Origin: Octopus sinensis
Taxonomy: Eukaryota
NCBI RefSeq assembly: GCF_006345805.1
Contig: NC_043007.1
Coordinates: 10,664,001-10,728,000 of the forward strand
Length of the DNA: 64,000 nucleotides
Direction of reading: 5' to 3'
The notes below the pieces were generated by a model that searched no databases, was not told the DNA's origin, and saw nothing but the letters and a program-made list of their open reading frames with translations. Shown piece after piece: positions 2,994 through 31,299 of this stretch (position 1 is the stretch's first letter; every line of letters starts with the position of its first letter). The position numbers and the translations under genes were made by a program.

Positions 2994-3269
2994 GCACCTT
3001 CATTATAAAACTGTAAGGTATATATGAATATGGCGAAAGTATAAAGAATTCGTACACCCGGTGTTTAGAGTTTGGTTAGGAGTTAGGGTTAGAGTTTTTT
3101 GTTACGTTGAAACGGGTGGTGTACGTATTCTTTACCTCTGCCTGCAACAATTTATATGATATGCATACCCGACGAATTATAATCTGATTTTTTAAAATTG
3201 CTCAACCCCACCCAAAAAATTTCAGGCATTTAGTAGAAAGGAATATTATTATTGTTATCATTATTTATT

Positions 3270-3395
3270 ATTATTAGTAGTAGTAGTAGTAGTAGTAATA
3301 GTGAGAGGAGGAACTGTTGGTGTTGAAATAGTTGTAACAGCAGCAGTAGTGACAGTGGGTGTGGCTGGAGTAGTAGTAGTAGTAATGGTGTTGTG

Positions 3396-3435
<40 letters not shown>

Positions 3436-3888
3436 CAGTAGTGGTAATGGTGGTGGTGGTGGTGGTGGTAGTAGTAGTAGTAGTGGTGGTGGTGGTGGTG
3501 GTGGTGGTGGAGGTAGTAGTAGTAGTAGTGGTGGTGGTGGTGGTGGTAGTAGTAGTAGTAGTAATGGTGGTGGTGGTGGTGGTGGTGGTGGTGGTAGTAG
3601 TAGTAGTAATAGTAGTAGTAGTAGTAGAATCGTACTTCTTTCACTTTCAGTATTAAACTGCTGCGCACAAAATCCGTCATTTTATATGTGTATATAGGTA
3701 GGTGTACGTGTGCACGTTTCATCAAATGAGTCTACGTACATGTAAGCGTGTGTGTATATGTGAGTGTTTGCGTGTATGTATGTATATGTGTGAGAGAGAG
3801 AGAGAGAGATGAGAGAAGAAACAGTCTGTATTTGTGTGTTTGTCTATGTAAGTCTGTGTGCGGATGTGTTTATGACAACCAAATCATT

Positions 3889-3931
<43 letters not shown>

Positions 3932-3995
3932 GGTGGTGGTGGTGGTGGTGGTGGTGGTGGTGGTGGTGGTGGTAGTAGTAGTAGTGGTGGTAGTA

Positions 3996-4042
<47 letters not shown>

Positions 4043-4052
4043 GGTGGTGGTG

Positions 4053-4087
<35 letters not shown>

Positions 4088-4142
4088 GGTGTTTGTGGTG
4101 GTGGTGGTGGTGGTAGTAGTAGTAGTGGTGGTAGTAGTGGTG

Positions 4143-4174
<32 letters not shown>

Positions 4175-4226
4175 GGTGGTGGTGGTGGTGGTGGTGGTGG
4201 TGGTAGTAGTAGTGGTGGTGGTAGTA

Positions 4227-4273
<47 letters not shown>

Positions 4274-4510
4274 GGTGTTGGCGGTTGTAGTAGTAGTAAT
4301 AGTAGCAGTAGTAGTAGTAGTAGTAGTAGTGGTAGTAGTATTGATAGTGGTGGTGGTGGTGGTGGTGGTGGTGTGGTGGCGGTGGTTGTAGTAGTAGTAG
4401 TATTAGTGGTGGTGGTGGTGGTGGTGGTGGTGGTGGTGGTTTGTAGTAGTAGTGGTAGTAGTAGTGATGGTGGTGGTGGTGGTGGTGGTGGTTGTAGTAG
4501 TAGTAGTAGT
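3270..4510. repeat. Compound (GTA)n/(GTG)n microsatellite arrays
   Basis: Alternating AGT and GGT runs, interrupted at about 3630-3890 by a short unique module; they account for the poly-V/poly-H/poly-G ORFs. Confidence 0.95.
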
Positions 4511-4519
4511 TAAAGTGGT

Positions 4520-4850
4520 GCATAGCCCTTTAAGAGATTTCGATGTTTATATCCTGTTTGTAGCGCAACGAGAAATCTAAGAGCGATAAGTATTAAGTCG
4601 TATAACGAGTTGTCTCCTTGGATAGCTTTGCAGGTTCAAGGGAGACTATTCATTTTGATTGGTTGAAATTGTAGAAATTGAAGAAAAAAAAAACAACAAA
4701 TATCTTACAGACTATAGAATTTTCTCAATAAAGCCAAGAGAAAAAGATGTTTTATAAACACTTTGTACCAGTATAAGAAGTTTAAAATTTTTTAGTTACC
4801 TAGAAATTATGTTAAAAACAGCCGTTCAAACCGAAAAGATCCGACGTCAC
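4520..4850 (+). repeat. ~330-bp local duplication (partner about 7530-7860), including part of a MITE-family sequence
   Basis: GTGCATAGCCCTTTAAGAGATTTCGATG...CAAACCGAAAAGATCC is present at both sites; the right half matches the MITE at 11856-12270 and 62388-62794. Confidence 0.8.
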
Positions 4851-4872: not shown

Positions 4873-4948
4873 AGCTGATGGAAAAACATAATAACACAAA
4901 CCTAATTGTTTGATGTTCCGTAATCTCTGAAATTGTACTGTATTGGTG
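4873..4948 (-). pseudogene. SAMHD1-like fragment (N-terminal [22 protein letters not shown] segment)
   Basis: GAAGCTGATGGAAAAACATAATAACACAAACCTAATTGTTTGATGTTCCGTAATCTCTGAAATTGTACTGTATT matches 15445-15520. Confidence 0.85.
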
Positions 4949-4981
4949 CTGGTGGTGGTCGTGGTGGTGGTGGTGGTCGTG

Positions 4982-5023
<42 letters not shown>

Positions 5024-5094
5024 ACAGTGGCGGTTGCTGCTTCTAAATTTCACTTTCACTATTAATCTACTGCGAATTAAATCCGTCATATTAA

Positions 5095-5145
<51 letters not shown>

Positions 5146-5148
<3 letters not shown>

Positions 5149-5376
5149 TTTCGCGGAATTTCCTGATTTACCAATGATAAGATCTTTTATGAAAGCAATT
5201 TCATCGGGCTCAATTTTTTCTTTAACATGTGGGTTCTCTTTAAGAAGATGATCCAACATTTGACACGATGCATCTTCATGATTCCATCTTTTATCTGTTC
5301 TTCGATATCCATCAATAAAATCTTTAAAGACATGCGAAAAAGGCGCATGTCCTAAATCATGACACAAACAAGCAAT
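5146..5376 (-). pseudogene. SAMHD1-like fragment (HD motif region)
   Basis: Within ORF 5086..5703: [75 protein letters not shown], bounded by (GT)n and (AGT)n; most similar to the 47472-48713 copy. Confidence 0.9.
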
Positions 5377-5392
5377 TATTGTAGTAGTAGTA

Positions 5393-5445
<53 letters not shown>

Positions 5446-5486
5446 TTGTTGTTGTTGTTGTTGTTGTAGTAGTAGTAGTAGTTGTT

Positions 5487-5524
<38 letters not shown>

Positions 5525-5554
5525 TGTGATGCGGTGGTGGTGGCAGCAGTTGTT

Positions 5555-5599
<45 letters not shown>

Positions 5600-5907
5600 C
5601 AACAAGAACAGCAACAGTAGGATCGAATAAGTTTCACTTTCTGTAGTAAAGTACTGCGAAGATTGTCAGTTGTTTTGATAATTGTATGCGTGTGTGTATG
5701 CATGTGTATATGTGTGTCTGAATAACTGTGTGTAAATGTGTTCGTGTGTATGTCTGTGTATGTGTCTGATCTACATGTGTGTGTGTGTGTGTGTGTTCGT
5801 TTGTGAGTGCGTGCGTGCGTGCGTGTGTATGTCTGTGAATGTGTATGTGTGTGAGAGAGAGAAAGAGAGAGAGAGAGTTTATTGGAAAAGGAAGATGGAA
5901 TTATCTA

Positions 5908-6020
5908 CCGGGTTCAGTCCCAGTGCGTGGCACCGTGGGCAAGTGTCTTCTACTATTGCCTTGGGCCGACCAAAGCCTTGTGAGTCGATTTGGTGGAAGG
6001 AAACTGAGATAAGCCCGTTG

Positions 6021-6051
<31 letters not shown>

Positions 6052-6285
6052 ATGTATGTATGTGTGTGTATATGTTTCGTGTGTCTGTGCTTGTCTCTCC
6101 AACATCGCTTGACAACCGATGCTGGTGTGTTTACGTCCCCGTAACTTAGCGGTTCGGCAAAAAGAGACCGATAGAATAAGTACTAGGCTTACAAAGGAAT
6201 AAGTCCTGGCGTCGATTTGCTCGACTGTAATGGCGGTGTTCCATCATGGCCGCAGTCAAAATGACTGAAACAAGTAAGTAAAAGA
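5908..6285 (+). mobile_element. SINE family A (5-prime truncated)
   Basis: CCGGGTTCAGTCCC...GACTGAAACAAGTAA, reverse complement of the family A consensus at 2568-2993. Confidence 0.75.
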
Positions 6286-6788
6286 AGTATTATGAGACGA
6301 ATGAAATGCCTCTAACCATTTTGTCCGGCGCGGAAACGATTCTACCAGCTCGCCACCTTTTTCTGCTCTTAAACAAATATATTTCAACGTGAGGATGGAC
6401 GATTTATTGCAGAATTGCTAGAGTGGTGGACATATTTGCCTTGCGGTATTCCTCTCATTTCTTTATATTCTGAGTTCAAATCGCAGCGGAGTTGACTGTG
6501 CCTTTCGTGTTTCTAAAGGCGATGAGACATATACTGAATAAATAATAAGGTTTTCCATTTTGTTTTTTAGGTCGTCTAGAAAATAATGGTGAATTTCTGT
6601 CGTTGACAGCTAAAGCAATTTTCGTTTTTGCAGGAGTGGCTGTGGTGTAGTAGCTTGCTAACCAACCACATGGTTCTGGGTTGAGTCCCACTGCGTGGCA
6701 TCATGGGCAAGTGTCTTCTGCTATAGCCCCGGGCCGACCAATGCCTTGTGCGTGGATTTGGTAGTCGGAAACTGAAAAGGAGCCTGTC

Positions 6789-6840
<52 letters not shown>

Positions 6841-7016
6841 AGTTTTGGAGATGATGTACAGGTATTATATATTAGAAGAAATGAGGTAATCAGAAGATCG
6901 GATGGTTTATATTTACAGATATTTATTTATATATTACTTTTTTTACATATATATCATATCATTTAGATCATTAGCGCTTTCTCCCATCTAGTGGGATTTT
7001 CAAATCAAAATAACTT

Positions 7017-7278
7017 CTGGTTCTCTTAAGAAGATGATCCACATTTCACACGATGCATCTTCATGTTTCCATTTATATCTGCACTTCGATTTCAATTAAT
7101 AAAACCTTCAAAGACATGCGAAAACGGCGCAAGTCCTAAACGGCGCATGTCCACAAACCAGCAATTTCCACGCAAAATATATCGCGTTCAGATACTTTCG
7201 GTGGGGCTTTTTGTTGGTTAAGATGACGAATCATTTTCCCAGCTAAATAACATGTCCCCAGACAATGCTCGAATCTAT
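7017..7278 (-). pseudogene. SAMHD1-like fragment with indels (NRFEH to HEDASC region)
   Basis: Matches about 48280-48540 (...CCACGCAAAATATATCGCGTTCAGATACTTTCGG...CATGTCCCCAGACAATGCTCGAATCTATTA) with small deletions and a duplicated AAACGGCGCA. Confidence 0.85.
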
Positions 7279-7358
7279 TAGGAAGAGCAACAGCGTCAGT
7301 AGTTGTAGTAGTAGTAGTAGTATTGGTGGTGGCGGTGGTGATGTTGGTGGTGGTGGTT

Positions 7359-9894: not shown

Positions 9895-11790
9895 TTTTTT
9901 GAGGGCGGGGGGGGGGGAATAAAATGCCTAGAAGGACCTACATAGCTGCAGAGAAGAAAATGACAGGCCATAAGCCAATAAAAGATAGGCTAACTCTTGC
10001 CCTTCATACCAATGCGAGTGGAGACTTAAAAACCAAGCCGCTCTTTGTCTACCATTCCGAAAACCCACGAGTGTTCAAGTCGAACAAAATCCTAAAAGAA
10101 AAGCTGCAAGTCATGTGGAGGGTAAGCGTTAAAGCCTGGGTCATCAGGCAATTCTTCACCGAGTTGGTCAAACTTGTCTTCGGACCAGCAATGAAAAAGT
10201 GCCTTCCGGAGAACGATCTTCTTCTCAACGTCATTCTCATCCTCGATAATGCTCCTGCTCACCCTCCTAACTTCCAAGATGATATCCTGGACGAATTTAA
10301 ATTCATAAATTTGTGTACTTTTCACGCAACACCACCCCATCTTTCAGCCCATGGACCAACTGGTGATCTTCAATTGTAAGAAATTGCACACCAAACATCT
10401 GTTTCGTTGGTGCTTTGAAGTCAGCGAAAATACAAATCTAACTCTTCATGAGTTTCGGATGGAGCACTACAACATTGTAAACTGTCTGAAAATCATCGAT
10501 ATGGCCTGGCAGGGTGTAACGAGAAGAATGTTGAATTCTGCATGGAGGAAATTGTGGTATCGGAAAGCGACTTCGTGGGGTTTGAGTGTGAGACACCTGT
10601 ACTTGAGGAGTGTATCTTGGCAAGTCCATAGGCCTCGAGGTTGTTGATAGTGACATTAACGATCTCGTCGAGGAACACTCCGAGGAGCTAACCACAGGTG
10701 AATTCTTTCAGCTTCAGGAGCAAAAGCACGTATGTGTGTGTATTAGGTGAACAGATGCGAAAGGAATGTGTATGTCTTTGAAGTAAAAAAATGAGTGAAT
10801 CGCTTCAGAGTTAAAAATAATTTATTCACTGGACTTAATTTGTCGTTGGTACACATAATTCTTCACTACATGCAAAATGTTGACAACTGCTACGAGTTGC
10901 TAGAATTAGAAACAGGGTACATCTGTGGAAGTGATGTGTCAGAAATGCACGTGTGTGTGTGTGTGTGTGTTTGTGTGTGTGTGTGAGTGTGTGTGCGTAA
11001 TTCATCTGAGATCAGTAGTCTACCGTAGAACTTCGAACATTTCTCTCGAGTCTCTACGACCAATCAAAACCTGTCGTCGTAGACATTTCTCGTTTGCCTG
11101 CTAGGCCTTTCTCCTCTCTGTCTGTCTGTTGACCACCGTATTTATAATAATCGTGGCAGCTAGAAGGACAGACATACTGCAGCAGGTTAGCTCCTGTCCA
11201 TTTGAACTTCGCCTGACATGGCTGAGTTTGTAGATCAATCACTTTTTGACAGGACAAAGAAAACCGTTTTTTCGCACCTGTTGATCGTGGTGGTTTGACG
11301 ACCGAAAATTCTTAGATTCGCTTTCGAATCTAGGCTTGGAGAAGGAAGTGTTAATTTTTACAAGCATTTGAATGCGGTGGAAGAGATTGATTCCCTGGTG
11401 GAGGACATTCTGGCGGAGAATGCTATCTCTACGAGTGACACAAGGACAGTGTTGGCAAGGTGGCAGTGTTTTTCTGTATTTCTAGAAAATTATCATCTTG
11501 TAAAATTAGCTACAGGTCGTGCAGCTACTTTATTTAATGACACTGCTCTGACGAGTTTTCGCAACATTTTTGAAAGGCAGACTTCTTTTGGTAAGTTTCT
11601 AATGAAACGGCCTGGAAGTGTAAAAAGTGAAGGAATTGTGTCCAAAAAGCCTAAATTAAGCGAAGTGAGACAAATTCCTGAAGTCTTAATAGAACATGAA
11701 TCTCCTTCCAAGCAGCAATCCTTCTCCTTCCGCTCTATCGTCTTCCTCGCGCACAAATTGTCCTCTTTAAGGCCATTCAGTTAATAAAAC
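9895..11790 (+). mobile_element. Degenerate Tigger/pogo DDE transposase remnant
   Basis: ORFs 9924..10379 (KDRLTL...NASGDLKTKPLFVYHSENPRVFK...ILILDNAPAHP), 10351..10647 (DQLVIFNCKKL...DMAWQGV...NSAWRKLW) and 11368..11784 resemble TIGD1/Tigger transposases; frameshifted and interrupted. Confidence 0.8.
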
Positions 11791-26218: not shown

Positions 26219-27394
26219 TTAAGCAACTTTCTTCTTTTCAAAGCAATAAACAATTTTCATCTGAAATTCGCTTGGCAACAAAAGCATATTTGATAGTTCA
26301 GATGGCTTATATTTAAATGATTTGTCCTCATTTTTTTTATAAAAGAGTATTTTCTTTAAAGGGTTTTCTTTTCCAGCACTATAATCCAAATTAGCTTCAC
26401 AGAATAACATTCCCTCTTTTTTGCCTTGATCCTTTCCAACTTTGCATGTGCCTTTGTATTCATAAGACCGATGGATTATATCCTTCAATTTATTCTGGGC
26501 CTCTTTGAGACTTTCATTATCCTCATTCTTTAATATCTCTTCCAAAATACAATCTGTAAAATAAGTAAATTCCTTCATATCGTCGACCTTTTCGAAGATT
26601 TTCAGGTGTTTATCTGCGGATTTGAAGGCCTCGCCAAGTAGTTTATTAAACAAAAGAACAGTTTTGTGTTGGTAAGCTGTTTTATGTAATCGATATCGTG
26701 CATAGAACATATCATAGAAATTATCAAGACATTTGTCTCTGTAGCATATTTCACCATCTATTACTTTGGACATTTTCATCATTCTCTCGTGATCAAATGA
26801 TTTTCCAATGCCAAGAAAATGAGAATCTCTCGCCAGATAATCCCATTTATTAACATCGATATAATTGGTTTTATTGTTGACAATTTGATAAAAAAATTTT
26901 GGTTTATTAGAATTTTTTGGTTCACCAATAATAATATCTTTTATGAAAGCAATTTCACCATCCTTAAATTGTTTTTCAATGTGTGAGTTTTCGGCAAGAA
27001 GGTAATCCAACATTTCGCACGTTGCATTTTCATTTTCCCACTTTTCACCTCCATTTTCCTCTCGATATTGGTTGATACTTTCTTGAAAGACGTAAGAGAA
27101 AGGGCCATGTCCTAAATTATGACACAAACCAGCAATTTCAACACAAAGCATATCTCGATCAGATATTTCCAGATCGGAATTTTGCTGTTTAAGATGGCAA
27201 ATCATTTTCCCAGCAAGATGACATGTCCCTAAACAATGCTCAAATCTATTATGTGAAGCTGATGGATAAACGTAATAACACAAACCTAATTGCTTGATAT
27301 TACGCAATCTCTGAAATTGTATTGTATTGATAATATCTACACAGAGTGGTTGAAGCTCCATGGTTCCATGAATAGCATCATGATAAATGGCCAT
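26219..27394 (-). CDS. SAMHD1: SAMHD1-like HD-domain protein, copy 3, intact ORF with degenerate active site (391 aa)
   Basis: Single-exon ORF; HNRFEH is retained, but CHNLGHGPFSY, WENENAT and IDVNKWDY replace [18 protein letters not shown] and IDVDKWDY. Confidence 0.9.
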   Translation of the reverse strand: MAIYHDAIHGTMELQPLCVDIINTIQFQRLRNIKQLGLCYYVYPSASHNRFEHCLGTCHLAGKMICHLKQQNSDLEISDRDMLCVEIAGLCHNLGHGPFSYVFQESINQYREENGGEKWENENATCEMLDYLLAENSHIEKQFKDGEIAFIKDIIIGEPKNSNKPKFFYQIVNNKTNYIDVNKWDYLARDSHFLGIGKSFDHERMMKMSKVIDGEICYRDKCLDNFYDMFYARYRLHKTAYQHKTVLLFNKLLGEAFKSADKHLKIFEKVDDMKEFTYFTDCILEEILKNEDNESLKEAQNKLKDIIHRSYEYKGTCKVGKDQGKKEGMLFCEANLDYSAGKENPLKKILFYKKNEDKSFKYKPSELSNMLLLPSEFQMKIVYCFEKKKVA

Positions 27395-27795
27395 TATTAA
27401 ATTATTAGGAAACTATCTAACCTGCTTTTTGATTGTCCTTTATGTCGCTGTTACTTCGAGTGTTGGGACTGAAATGTGGAGTAGACATATGAATTATCCA
27501 GGTATGTTCAGTACGATATTTCTAATAATTGATTTCAAAAGATCTCGGTCGTATTAGCATTTAGATGTCGAATATCACAAATAACAAGCGATCCAAAGTG
27601 TCTCTGTTGTCGGTAGCGACGCAACGAAATAAACTGTAATGTTACATCAAATGTTTGCCTCAAAAATTGGGTGTGGTTGTCAGCTGATTTTAAGAAAGTG
27701 AAAGTAGAATTGTCCAATGAGAGAAGCGCTGTAAAGAAGTGTGTGTAGTTGAGAAACTGAAAGTGAAAATTGTACGGCAGTGCTGCCACTACTGC
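27365..27795. repeat. Inverted repeat arm (partner about 29728-30160)
   Basis: About 410 bp of upstream sequence plus the first ~10 codons are almost identical in inverted orientation; overlapping spurious ORFs 27535..28026 and 29636..29989 encode nearly the same peptide. Confidence 0.9.
27694..27776 (-). promoter_or_regulatory. Upstream module of copy 3: GAAAGTGAAAGT, CCAAT, GAAACTGAAAGTGAAA (IRF/ISRE-like; also the terminal inverted motif)
   Basis: Motifs read directly at 27694-27705, about 27714 and 27753-27768; homologous modules lie upstream of the other two intact copies. Function is inferred. Confidence 0.5.
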
Positions 27796-27866
27796 TGATA
27801 ATAATAATAATAATAGACCAACTGCTACTACTACTACTACTACTACAAATAATAACAATAATAATA

Positions 27867-29394: not shown

Positions 29395-29747
29395 CATCAT
29401 CATCATCATCATCATTATTATTGAATGAGAGAGCAGTGCATGCCATTAAAGTGACACTGGGGTAAAATATACGAAGCCCAGTATACCCATCAGGACTACC
29501 CGTCTGATAAGGGTACACTAGGCACATGCATCACAACCATATGGGCGCGACATGGTGATCTCATATCAAGATAAACAGCGCATGACCTTCCATGTGGGGC
29601 CCAGTTTGAATTTTCTTCTGGTCGAGTAGCCCATCGTGCTCCAAAGGTCCCTGAATAAGGATTGTTTTCTATTAGTAGTAGTAGTTGTTGTTTTTGTTGT
29701 TGTTGTTCCATTATCATTAACATTATTAGCAGTAGTGGCAGCACTGC

Positions 29748-29830
29748 CGTACAATTTTCACTTTCAGTTTCTCAACTACACACACTTCTTTACAGCGCTT
29801 CTCTCATTGGACAATACAACTTTCACTTTC
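29748..29830 (+). promoter_or_regulatory. Upstream module of copy 4 (CGTACAATTTTCACTTTCAGTTTC...ATTGG...ACTTTCACTTTC)
   Basis: Inverted counterpart of 27694-27776. Confidence 0.5.
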
Positions 29831-30129
29831 TTAAAATCAGCTGACAACCACACCCAATTTTTGAGGCAAACATTTGATGTAACATCACTGTTTATTTCGT
29901 TGCGTCGCTACCGACAACAGAGACACTTTGGATCGCTTGTTATTTGTGATATTCGACATCTAAATGCTAATACGACCGAGATCTTTTGAAATCAATTATT
30001 AGAAATATCGTACTGAACATACCTGGATAATTCATATGTCTACTCCACATTTCAGACCCAACACTCGAAGTAACAGCGACATAAAGGACAATCAAAAAGC
30101 AGGTTAGATAGTTTCCTAATAATTTAATA

Positions 30130-31299
30130 ATGGCCATTTATCATGATGCTATTCATGGATCTATGGAGCTTCCGCCACTCTGTGTTGATATTATCAATAC
30201 AATACAATTTCAGAGATTACGTAATATAAAACAATTAAGTTTGGTTAATTACGTTTATCCATCGGCTTCACATAATAGATTCGAGCATTGTCTAGGAACG
30301 TGTTACCTAGCTGGGAAAATGGTTCGCCATCTTAAACAGCAAAATCCCGATCTGGAAATATCTGATCGAGATATGCTTTGTGTTGAAATTGCTGGTTTGT
30401 GTCATGATTTAGGACATGCGCCTTTTTCTCATGTCTTTCAAGAAATTATCAACGAGTATCGCAAGGAAAATGGAGGTGAAGAGTGGGAACATGAAGATGC
30501 ATCATGTGAAATGTTGGGGCATCTTTTTAAAGAGAACCCACATATTAAAGGAGAACTTAAGTCTGATGAAATTGATTTCATAAAAGATCTCATTACTGGT
30601 AAACCAGAAAAATCTCAGAGACCAAAATTTCTTTACCAAATCATCAACAATAAATCCTATAACATCGACGTTGATAAATGGGATTACCTAGCTAGAGATT
30701 CCCATTTTCTTGGTTTTGGAAAATCCTTTGATCACGAAAGAATGATGAAAATGTCCAAAGTAATAGGTGATCAAATATGCTACAGAGACAAAAGTCTTGA
30801 TAATTTCTATGATATGTTTTATGCACGATATCGATTACATAAAACTGCTTGCAAACACAAAACTGCTCTTCTTTTTAATAAACTACTTGATAAAGTTTTC
30901 AACTCTGCCAATGAACAACTACAAATTTTCGAAAAGGTCGACGATATGAAGGAGTTTACTTATTTTACAGATAGTATTTTGGAGGAGATATTAAAGAATG
31001 AGGATAATGAAAGTCTCAAAGAGGCCCGGAAGAAATTGAAGGATATAATCTCTCGGTCTTATAAATACAAAGGCACAGACGGAGATGAAAATGACCAGGA
31101 CGGAAACCAAGACAAAATATTATGTGAAGCCGGTTTTGATTATGGAGCTAGGGAAGGAAACCCGTTAGAGAAGATACCATTTTATAAAAAAGATGAAACC
31201 GAATCATTCACATATAGTCAAGAAGAACTAGACGAGAATCTTTTGCTGCCAAGCGACTTTCATATGAATATCACTCACTACTTTGAAAAGGAAAGTTAA
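30130..31299 (+). CDS. SAMHD1: SAMHD1-like HD-domain dNTP triphosphohydrolase, copy 4 (389 aa)
   Basis: Single-exon ORF with [36 protein letters not shown] and DYG..GNPL motifs; no SAM domain. Confidence 0.92.
   Translation: MAIYHDAIHGSMELPPLCVDIINTIQFQRLRNIKQLSLVNYVYPSASHNRFEHCLGTCYLAGKMVRHLKQQNPDLEISDRDMLCVEIAGLCHDLGHAPFSHVFQEIINEYRKENGGEEWEHEDASCEMLGHLFKENPHIKGELKSDEIDFIKDLITGKPEKSQRPKFLYQIINNKSYNIDVDKWDYLARDSHFLGFGKSFDHERMMKMSKVIGDQICYRDKSLDNFYDMFYARYRLHKTACKHKTALLFNKLLDKVFNSANEQLQIFEKVDDMKEFTYFTDSILEEILKNEDNESLKEARKKLKDIISRSYKYKGTDGDENDQDGNQDKILCEAGFDYGAREGNPLEKIPFYKKDETESFTYSQEELDENLLLPSDFHMNITHYFEKES

Follow-up and report, generated by a model that had tools for sequence, protein, structure and literature searches.

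What is an intact SAMHD1-like gene with a dismantled catalytic site doing in an octopus genome: working without catalysis, or decaying? The question is raised by a stretch of 64,000 nucleotides (nt) from Octopus sinensis chromosome CM016869.1 (~10.66-10.73 Mb; hereafter the window), in which tblastn found six single-exon SAMHD1-like copies without a SAM domain, A to F (Table 1). The subject of this analysis is copy D, an open reading frame (ORF) of 391 codons in which four catalytic residues are replaced. SAMHD1 is a central regulator of deoxynucleoside triphosphate (dNTP) pools and a restriction factor, and its catalysis-independent roles in nucleic-acid binding, DNA repair, and immune damping are debated and have usually been probed with engineered dead mutants. 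In the octopus genes, evolution made the same mutations, D207N included, and kept them under selection across three species. Gene D has lost residues essential for catalysis and is otherwise an intact homolog, as expected of a pseudoenzyme, and we consider it likely that gene D is a retained, functional, non-catalytic SAMHD1 paralog. The original prediction, made from the DNA letters, had described an intact gene with a dead site. This part of the picture stood, and what it had missed was that the gene lies on the minus strand, that its dead site is common to a conserved clade, and that the gene is a gene-conversion mosaic.

A SAMHD1-family protein with a replaced catalytic site

The ORF of gene D runs on the minus strand from ATG to TAA through 391 codons with no internal stop, in agreement with the intact 391-aa frame first proposed. 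A plus-strand reading of the same interval was ruled out, its translation being riddled with stops. The product matched the Pfam HD domain with a score above cutoff and matched human SAMHD1 PDB chains with E=3.9e-77 in phmmer (query residues 1-317 against human residues 115-460), at about 38% identity. An AlphaFold2 model built with a 44-sequence alignment reached a predicted local distance difference test score (pLDDT) of 92.9 and a predicted template-modeling score (pTM) of 0.92, and Foldseek placed this model on SAMHD1 catalytic cores with template-modeling (TM) scores of 0.90-0.92. By its HD-domain fold and homology, the protein is a member of the SAMHD1 family. The protein shares with human SAMHD1 the same fold and the same allosteric-site (AL) and pocket residues. 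Unlike human SAMHD1, it has neither a SAM domain nor a C-terminal regulatory tail (391 versus 626 aa), is encoded by a single exon, and, as in all octopus copies, carries the equivalent of D137N at AL1. Pfam detected no SAM domain in the product, whose ORF begins at the equivalent of human residue 115, and the domain is likewise missing from all HD-only octopus and Argonauta copies.

Residues were mapped onto human numbering through the PDB SAMHD1 alignment, and the corresponding codons were then read from the DNA. Both steps bore out the four replacements that had been claimed (D207N, H215Y, H233N, and D311N; codons in Table 1). The metal tetrad H167/H206-D207/D311 is incomplete, with H167 and H206 kept and D207 and D311 both Asn, and both members of the catalytic His pair are gone (H215 to Y101 and H233 to N121). 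In human SAMHD1, H233 has been described as a ligand of Mg3 and H215 as the general acid (PMC7311409). Read error was ruled out as a source of the substitutions: independent O. vulgaris and O. bimaculoides assemblies share the codons, and those in the O. vulgaris assembly are identical, so that the substitutions are genuine.

The residues said to be kept (R164, H167, H206, K312, Y315, R366, Y374, and Q375) were all found in gene D, together with H210, Q149, L150, D309, D319, and H370. The substrate pocket is complete, and Y374 and Q375 are better preserved than in E-type active copies. As far as sequence tells, the AL1/AL2 residues Q142, R145, R451, V156, D330, R333, R352, K354, N358, H376, K377, and K523 are kept as well. 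In our residue table, the allosteric-site residues examined were identical between dead and active octopus copies, and K116, N119, and R372 were altered in all octopus copies, dead or active. The AL1 guanine-specificity residue D137 is Asn (N23 in gene D) in every octopus and Argonauta HD-only copy. Human SAMHD1 D137N has reportedly been crystallized with XTP as activator. Because Asn occupies this position throughout, the octopod subfamily as a whole may be activated by a nucleotide other than GTP.

Among the extant sequences, 24 alignment columns separated dead from active copies, and 15 of these lay within residues 93-178, around the active site. The four replacements themselves (D to N twice, H to N, and H to Y) are neutral and near-isosteric; in our view such changes resemble the kind used for substrate-trapping mutants. 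They fall on positions that have been mutated in human SAMHD1 (H206R/D207N, H215A, H233A, and D311A) to yield inactive proteins that still bind substrate and tetramerize. Activity of H215A was not measurable and kcat of H233A was down about 300-fold; both mutants still tetramerized, H215A still bound a substrate analogue, and H206R/D207N retained dNTP binding with an empty HD metal site (PMC7311409; see also PMC8177086 on human SAMHD1 mutants and HD-domain chemistry). The difference is that in octopus the four catalytic residues were replaced naturally and their replacements then conserved across species.

A dead-site clade under purifying selection

The dead-site core (CHNLGH-GPFSY and WENxNAT) was present in at least nine intact ORFs of 391-413 aa from three species. 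These comprised gene D and three copies in a further O. sinensis cluster (locus L004), two identical D orthologs (loci L001 and L002) and two additional copies (locus L005) in O. vulgaris, and one ORF in O. bimaculoides (locus L003). All nine dead-type copies carry AAT at the D207 position and TAC at the H215 position, the latter two steps away from CAT, and the dead-type copies appear to have a single origin because this two-change codon is common to all. Among 123 fetched homologs, 111 had HD..H..D at all three motifs, 6 were unscorable for at least one motif, and the HN..Y combination was confined to six Octopus dead-type proteins. In the maximum-likelihood (ML) tree, gene D and its O. vulgaris ortholog together formed the sister lineage of the O. 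bimaculoides, L004, and L005 dead copies (ultrafast bootstrap 95), with the E-type active copies branching next outside the dead clade. Synonymous divergence (dS) between gene D and the other dead copies was 0.30-0.39, and that between the O. bimaculoides copy and the L004/L005 copies was about 0.19; the lineage of gene D therefore seems to predate the divergence of O. bimaculoides and O. vulgaris. These findings argue for a dead-site clade, specific to Octopus, that arose once, before O. bimaculoides split from O. vulgaris and O. sinensis, and this origin would have occurred among intronless HD-only SAMHD1-like genes arranged in tandem. An accident of a single lineage was ruled out, as the dead core is common to a clade.

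The O. vulgaris orthologs of gene D are both intact and without stops, as the proposed ortholog check required, and differ from gene D by two nonsynonymous and two synonymous changes. The two coding sequences (L001 9812-10987 and L002 9812-10987; OX597824.1, about 44 kb apart) were 100% identical. The D/E pair is thus present in two copies in O. vulgaris and in one in the O. sinensis window, and the doubled pair is due either to a segmental duplication of very recent date or to duplication in the assembly.

We estimated the ratio of nonsynonymous to synonymous substitution (omega) with an ML codon-model program (GY94-type, F3x4, branch classes). Omega was 0.29 for active paralogs and outgroups, 0.46 for the lineage of gene D (p=0.004 versus omega=1), and 0.42 for the other dead-type branches (p=3e-8 versus omega=1). 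The difference between the gene D lineage and the background was not significant (p=0.18). A tree-free pairwise ML comparison of gene D with the O. bimaculoides dead gene gave an omega of 0.38 (p=4e-7). By region, the gene D lineage had an omega of 0.42 in codons 1-300 (p=0.02) and of 0.55, not significant, in the fast-evolving C-terminal 91 codons. When the catalytic core (codons 76-225) was fitted to a separate tree, omega was 0.47 for all branches after inactivation taken together, against 0.25 in the background (p=0.0014 versus neutrality). We detected no positive selection on the dead-clade stem, where neither the omega for the whole gene (0.83) nor that for the core (0.56) differed significantly from 1. 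Constraint in the dead copies is relaxed roughly 1.5- to 2-fold yet clearly present, and purifying selection continues after inactivation, with the caveat that the gene is a mosaic. Intact orthologs, an omega well below 1, and genuine substitutions support the original view that selection rather than decay accounts for the gene.

The state of the frame points in the same direction. With about 0.276 substitutions per codon, the stem leading to gene D accounts for about 108 substitutions, and in simulations the frame stayed open in 0.3% of trials after 108 random substitutions and in 0.04% after 190. No indel separates D from E across 1,621 nt, and the nearby copies B and C are frameshifted.

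Codons 301-391, the C-terminal lobe, evolve very fast, with an omega of 1.42 in the L003/L004/L005 dead group and 0.64 in the background, and the young active pair formed by E and L4d, a copy in L004, had a whole-gene omega of 0.85. This fast lobe could be due to positive selection or to relaxation.

A dead-type protein was detected directly. A published proteome of O. vulgaris skin mucus (PMC11431876, Data S1) lists a dead-type sister of gene D, OctVul6B005787P1 (A0AA36FCK9), as a high-confidence master protein with 24% coverage, 9 peptides, and 15 peptide-spectrum matches (PSMs); one peptide is unique to the protein and six are unique to its group. It is identical to the product of L005 15431-16672, and dead-type proteins are therefore made.

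Some of the sister dead copies lose additional active-site residues (H210Y, H233K, E234K, K312Q, and R366L, with R164I in P0122). Across the eight aligned dead copies, H167, H206, and R164 are invariant and H210 is kept in seven. Two O. sinensis dead-type copies (L004 10001-11242 and 26861-28102) keep GAT (Asp) at the D311 position, where their closest relatives have AAT-CAA (Asn-Gln), which suggests patchy gene conversion from active copies.

The literature searched, on SAMHD1 in octopus and other cephalopods and on its pseudoenzymes and paralog expansions, contained no account of the dead clade. What is new here is a natural, conserved dead SAMHD1 subfamily inside an octopod-specific expansion. 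It offers a natural system in which to ask what function the SAMHD1 scaffold has when hydrolysis is absent and whether active subunits are regulated by dead ones.

Decay, altered chemistry, or binding without catalysis

Gene D could alternatively be a non-functional copy in slow decay, its frame open by chance or through conversion from functional neighbors, which we regard as improbable, if somewhat less so than the other alternatives to a retained pseudoenzyme that are weighed below. Several observations lean toward decay and weigh against a functional gene. The array does yield dead copies, with A fragmented and B and C frameshifted. Constraint on gene D is looser than on the active paralogs (0.46 versus 0.29), a four-class model fitted better than a single omega (2dlnL=8.99, 3 df, p of about 0.03), and the core test on the gene D branch alone gave an omega of 0.49 and did not reject neutrality (p=0.13), being underpowered at 150 codons. 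Sliding-window identity and segment trees grouped gene D with the dead clade in the core only (codons 76-225). Its N-terminal quarter grouped with neither clade, its first 150 nt being closest to E; codons 226-300 were closest to E-type and F copies; and the last 90 codons were distant from all sampled copies (71-76% nucleotide identity). These patterns indicate that gene conversion is active in the array and that gene D is a mosaic whose 5' end and flank have undergone conversion with E. Because a mosaic breaks the single-tree assumption, the branch omegas obtained from one tree are approximations, and conversion could hold a frame open without selection. Evidence of expression is likewise direct for the sister dead-type paralog only. 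Target-specific tryptic peptides (the unique ones include QQNSDLEISDR, TNYIDVNK, and EGMLFCEANLDYSAGK) were not found in the portion of the mucus proteome tables searched, and O. sinensis RefSeq has no stand-alone model of gene D, covering it only through the chimeric XP_029642718.2.

Against decay stand an omega significantly below 1 both on the gene D lineage and in pairwise comparison with other dead-type genes, a probability of 0.003 that no stop would have arisen at the divergence of this lineage, and the detection of the sister protein by mass spectrometry. Furthermore, the dead core is intact in nine ORFs from three species. This core persists even though conversion from active neighbors would erase the dead residues.

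A different objection is that gene D may still encode an enzyme, with re-tuned chemistry, a new substrate, another metal arrangement, or a slow hydrolysis serving as a timer. Its inactivity is something we infer from human mutants, a basis that weighs against our reading. Near-isosteric replacements at all four positions retain hydrogen-bonding capacity, and the concentration of 15 of the 24 diagnostic columns at residues 93-178 resembles coordinated remodeling more than simple loss. The retention of H167, H206, and R164 in every aligned dead copy and of H210 in most of them fits as well, and HD-domain proteins are chemically versatile (PMC8177086). In human SAMHD1, however, H215A, H233A, and the H206R/D207N double change abolish or strongly cut activity (PMC7311409), and gene D lacks two of the four metal ligands. 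In addition, the sister dead copies erode more catalytic and pocket residues, which is unexpected for a conserved new site, and omega does not exceed 1 on the stem branch. We therefore consider continued catalysis unlikely. The same erosion has a cost for the pseudoenzyme reading, as it means that substrate binding may not be the conserved property.

Heavy adenosine-to-inosine (A-to-I) recoding of mRNA is established in coleoid cephalopods. Editing could in principle recode AAT (Asn) at the D207, D235, and D311 positions to GAT (Asp), as all three D-to-N changes are G-to-A changes at first codon positions, the class that A-to-I editing reverses. The nucleotides concerned are 27118, 27028, and 26851 of the window (minus strand). 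It would not restore His from the TAC at H215 or the AAT at H233, and either loss cripples human SAMHD1 (PMC7311409), making restoration by editing highly improbable.

Gene D as a retained pseudoenzyme probably works by binding rather than catalysis. We propose that its product still binds nucleotides and oligomerizes without hydrolyzing dNTPs, and that it may co-assemble with active paralogs into mixed tetramers that would tune dNTPase output. Mixed tetramers are our favored, if tentative, mode of action. The best partner candidate would be the divergently transcribed neighbor E, which has the same 5' flank and in which the canonical motifs CHDLGH, WEHEDAS, and DVDKWDY are present. In SAMHD1, the allosteric sites are formed where subunits meet. 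We favor mixed tetramers because these interface-built sites are conserved and because D shares the flank of E. A non-hydrolyzing binder of dNTPs or nucleic acid comes next, as a slightly less probable option, and a decoy seems unlikely.

The evidence on the shared flank is as follows. D and E form the arms of an inverted repeat (26234-27854 and 29670-31290) that is 1,621 nt long, ungapped, and 87% identical. Identity between the two was 97-100% at flank positions -345 to -1 and 84% in the coding sequence, and the flank was therefore homogenized recently. The cis-regulatory sequence is very probably common to D and E. Conservation across all paralogs, the O. bimaculoides copy included, covers about 230 nt upstream of the genes. 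Within this conserved upstream block (27395-27650 in the window), the L003, L004, and L005 copies contain CCAAT-like and TATAA-like motifs, which read CTAAT and GATAA in both D and E.

Divergent pairs of a dead and an E-type active copy also occur at L004, L005, L001, and L002. Duplication of the dead/active pair as one unit was unsupported: dS between E and L4d was 0.06 versus 0.35 between D and L4c, and the pair spacers are homologous near the genes only. A speculative extension, to which we give a low probability, is a two-component system of divergent dead/active pairs with homogenized promoters and obligate mixed tetramers, in which the dead subunit would be a prozyme-like, nucleotide-sensing regulator of dNTP levels. 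If true, such a system could, for example, keep in check viruses or the retroelements of cephalopod genomes, which are very active.

Other families offer parallels. Prozymes of trypanosomatids (AdoMetDC and DHS) and antizyme inhibitor, a dead ODC paralog, are retained because they oligomerize with an active paralog or compete on its behalf. They provide the model that we favor for gene D, with the difference that heteromers have been demonstrated there, whereas here they are suggested by interface and allosteric residues and the shared flank. The RelA pseudo-hydrolase is an HD domain that descends from a bifunctional Rel/SpoT ancestor, has become inactive, and is retained for a non-catalytic, regulatory role. 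Like gene D, it is an HD-superfamily domain whose catalytic residues were lost after gene duplication; unlike gene D, it is bacterial, lies within one polypeptide, and belongs to another HD subfamily, and the two are related in sequence at the superfamily level only. OASL and the inactive domains of OAS2 and OAS3 have lost catalysis and kept ligand binding and an antiviral role. They too are dead members of a nucleotide-metabolizing innate-immunity enzyme family expanded by duplication, but their fold is unrelated, and no octopus SAMHD1-like protein is known to have an antiviral role.

Tandem array and gene annotation

Positions of the copies in the window, of the replaced codons, and of the repeat arms are collected in Table 1. 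The disrupted copies A, B, and C, all of the active type, suggest that the array evolves by birth and death, provided that the frameshifts do not stem from errors in the assembly. Locus L004 lies about 90 kb from the array in the window, the homologous O. vulgaris region holds more copies, and homologs from Argonauta hians are single-exon genes with active-type motifs. Together these genes document a large octopod expansion of intronless HD-only SAMHD1-like genes, previously undescribed as far as the literature searched shows.

Table 1. Features of the SAMHD1-like array (positions counted from the first nucleotide of the window)
Feature	Position	Strand	Description
Copy A	4879..7288	-	Degraded; scattered fragments split by microsatellites; ORF at 5086..5703
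Copy B	14405..15626	-	Active-type; frameshift and stop
Copy C	16978..18131	-	Active-type; frameshift
Gene D	26219..27394	-	Single-exon 391-aa SAMHD1-like HD-domain ORF; dead catalytic site; no SAM domain
Codon AAT (N182 of D)	26849..26851	-	Human D311 position (metal-ligand Asp); N in 7/9 dead-type ORFs
Codon AAT (N121 of D)	27032..27034	-	Human H233 position (Mg3-ligand His)
Codon TAC (Y101 of D)	27092..27094	-	Human H215 position (general-acid His); TAC in every dead-type copy
Codon AAT (N93 of D)	27116..27118	-	Human D207 position (metal-bridging Asp, HD motif); AAT in 9/9 dead-type copies, GAT in all active copies
5' flank of D	27395..27854	-	Inverted-repeat arm; presumed promoter and 5' untranslated region; near-identical to flank of E
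5' flank of E	29670..30129	+	Partner arm of the inverted repeat
Gene E	30130..31299	+	Intact 389-aa active-type paralog; canonical HD/H/H/D; head-to-head with D
Gene F	47472..48713	-	Intact 413-aa active-type paralog

Current RefSeq models in the array proved to be chimeric. The exact 391-aa product of gene D was not found in the protein collection searched. XP_029642718.2 (400 aa) is a fusion of two genes 22.5 kb apart (26219-48713, minus strand), its first part coming from the 5' half of F and its second from the 3' half of D. It was ruled out as evidence of splicing, since no GT/GC..AG pair exists at any homologous junction, and is probably an annotation artifact. P0002 is a similar chimera that joins L4a and L4d, 29.5 kb apart (L004 10001-39553). 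In O. vulgaris, the ortholog of gene D is annotated as a 328-aa model that begins at Met64.

At other loci in O. sinensis and O. vulgaris, the active-type proteins P0005, P0008, P0015, and P0018 carry a repeat insertion of ~170 aa in the C-terminal linker, with repeat units KIKGTFTGTVTG.. and SESKMQ... One insertion-bearing active-type paralog, A0A6P7U4P1, is abundant in skin mucus, where the proteome contained 16 of its peptides with 44 PSMs.

The window also contains transposon remnants at 9924-10379 (plus strand), 60949-61593 (plus strand), and 56926-57468 (minus strand), among which are part of a DDE_1 endonuclease (Pfam E=1.7e-14) and a region with a weak match to zf-RVT. The genes are separated by very long stretches of microsatellite or low-complexity sequence, such as those at 3261-4523, 44945-46344, and 49912-50631.

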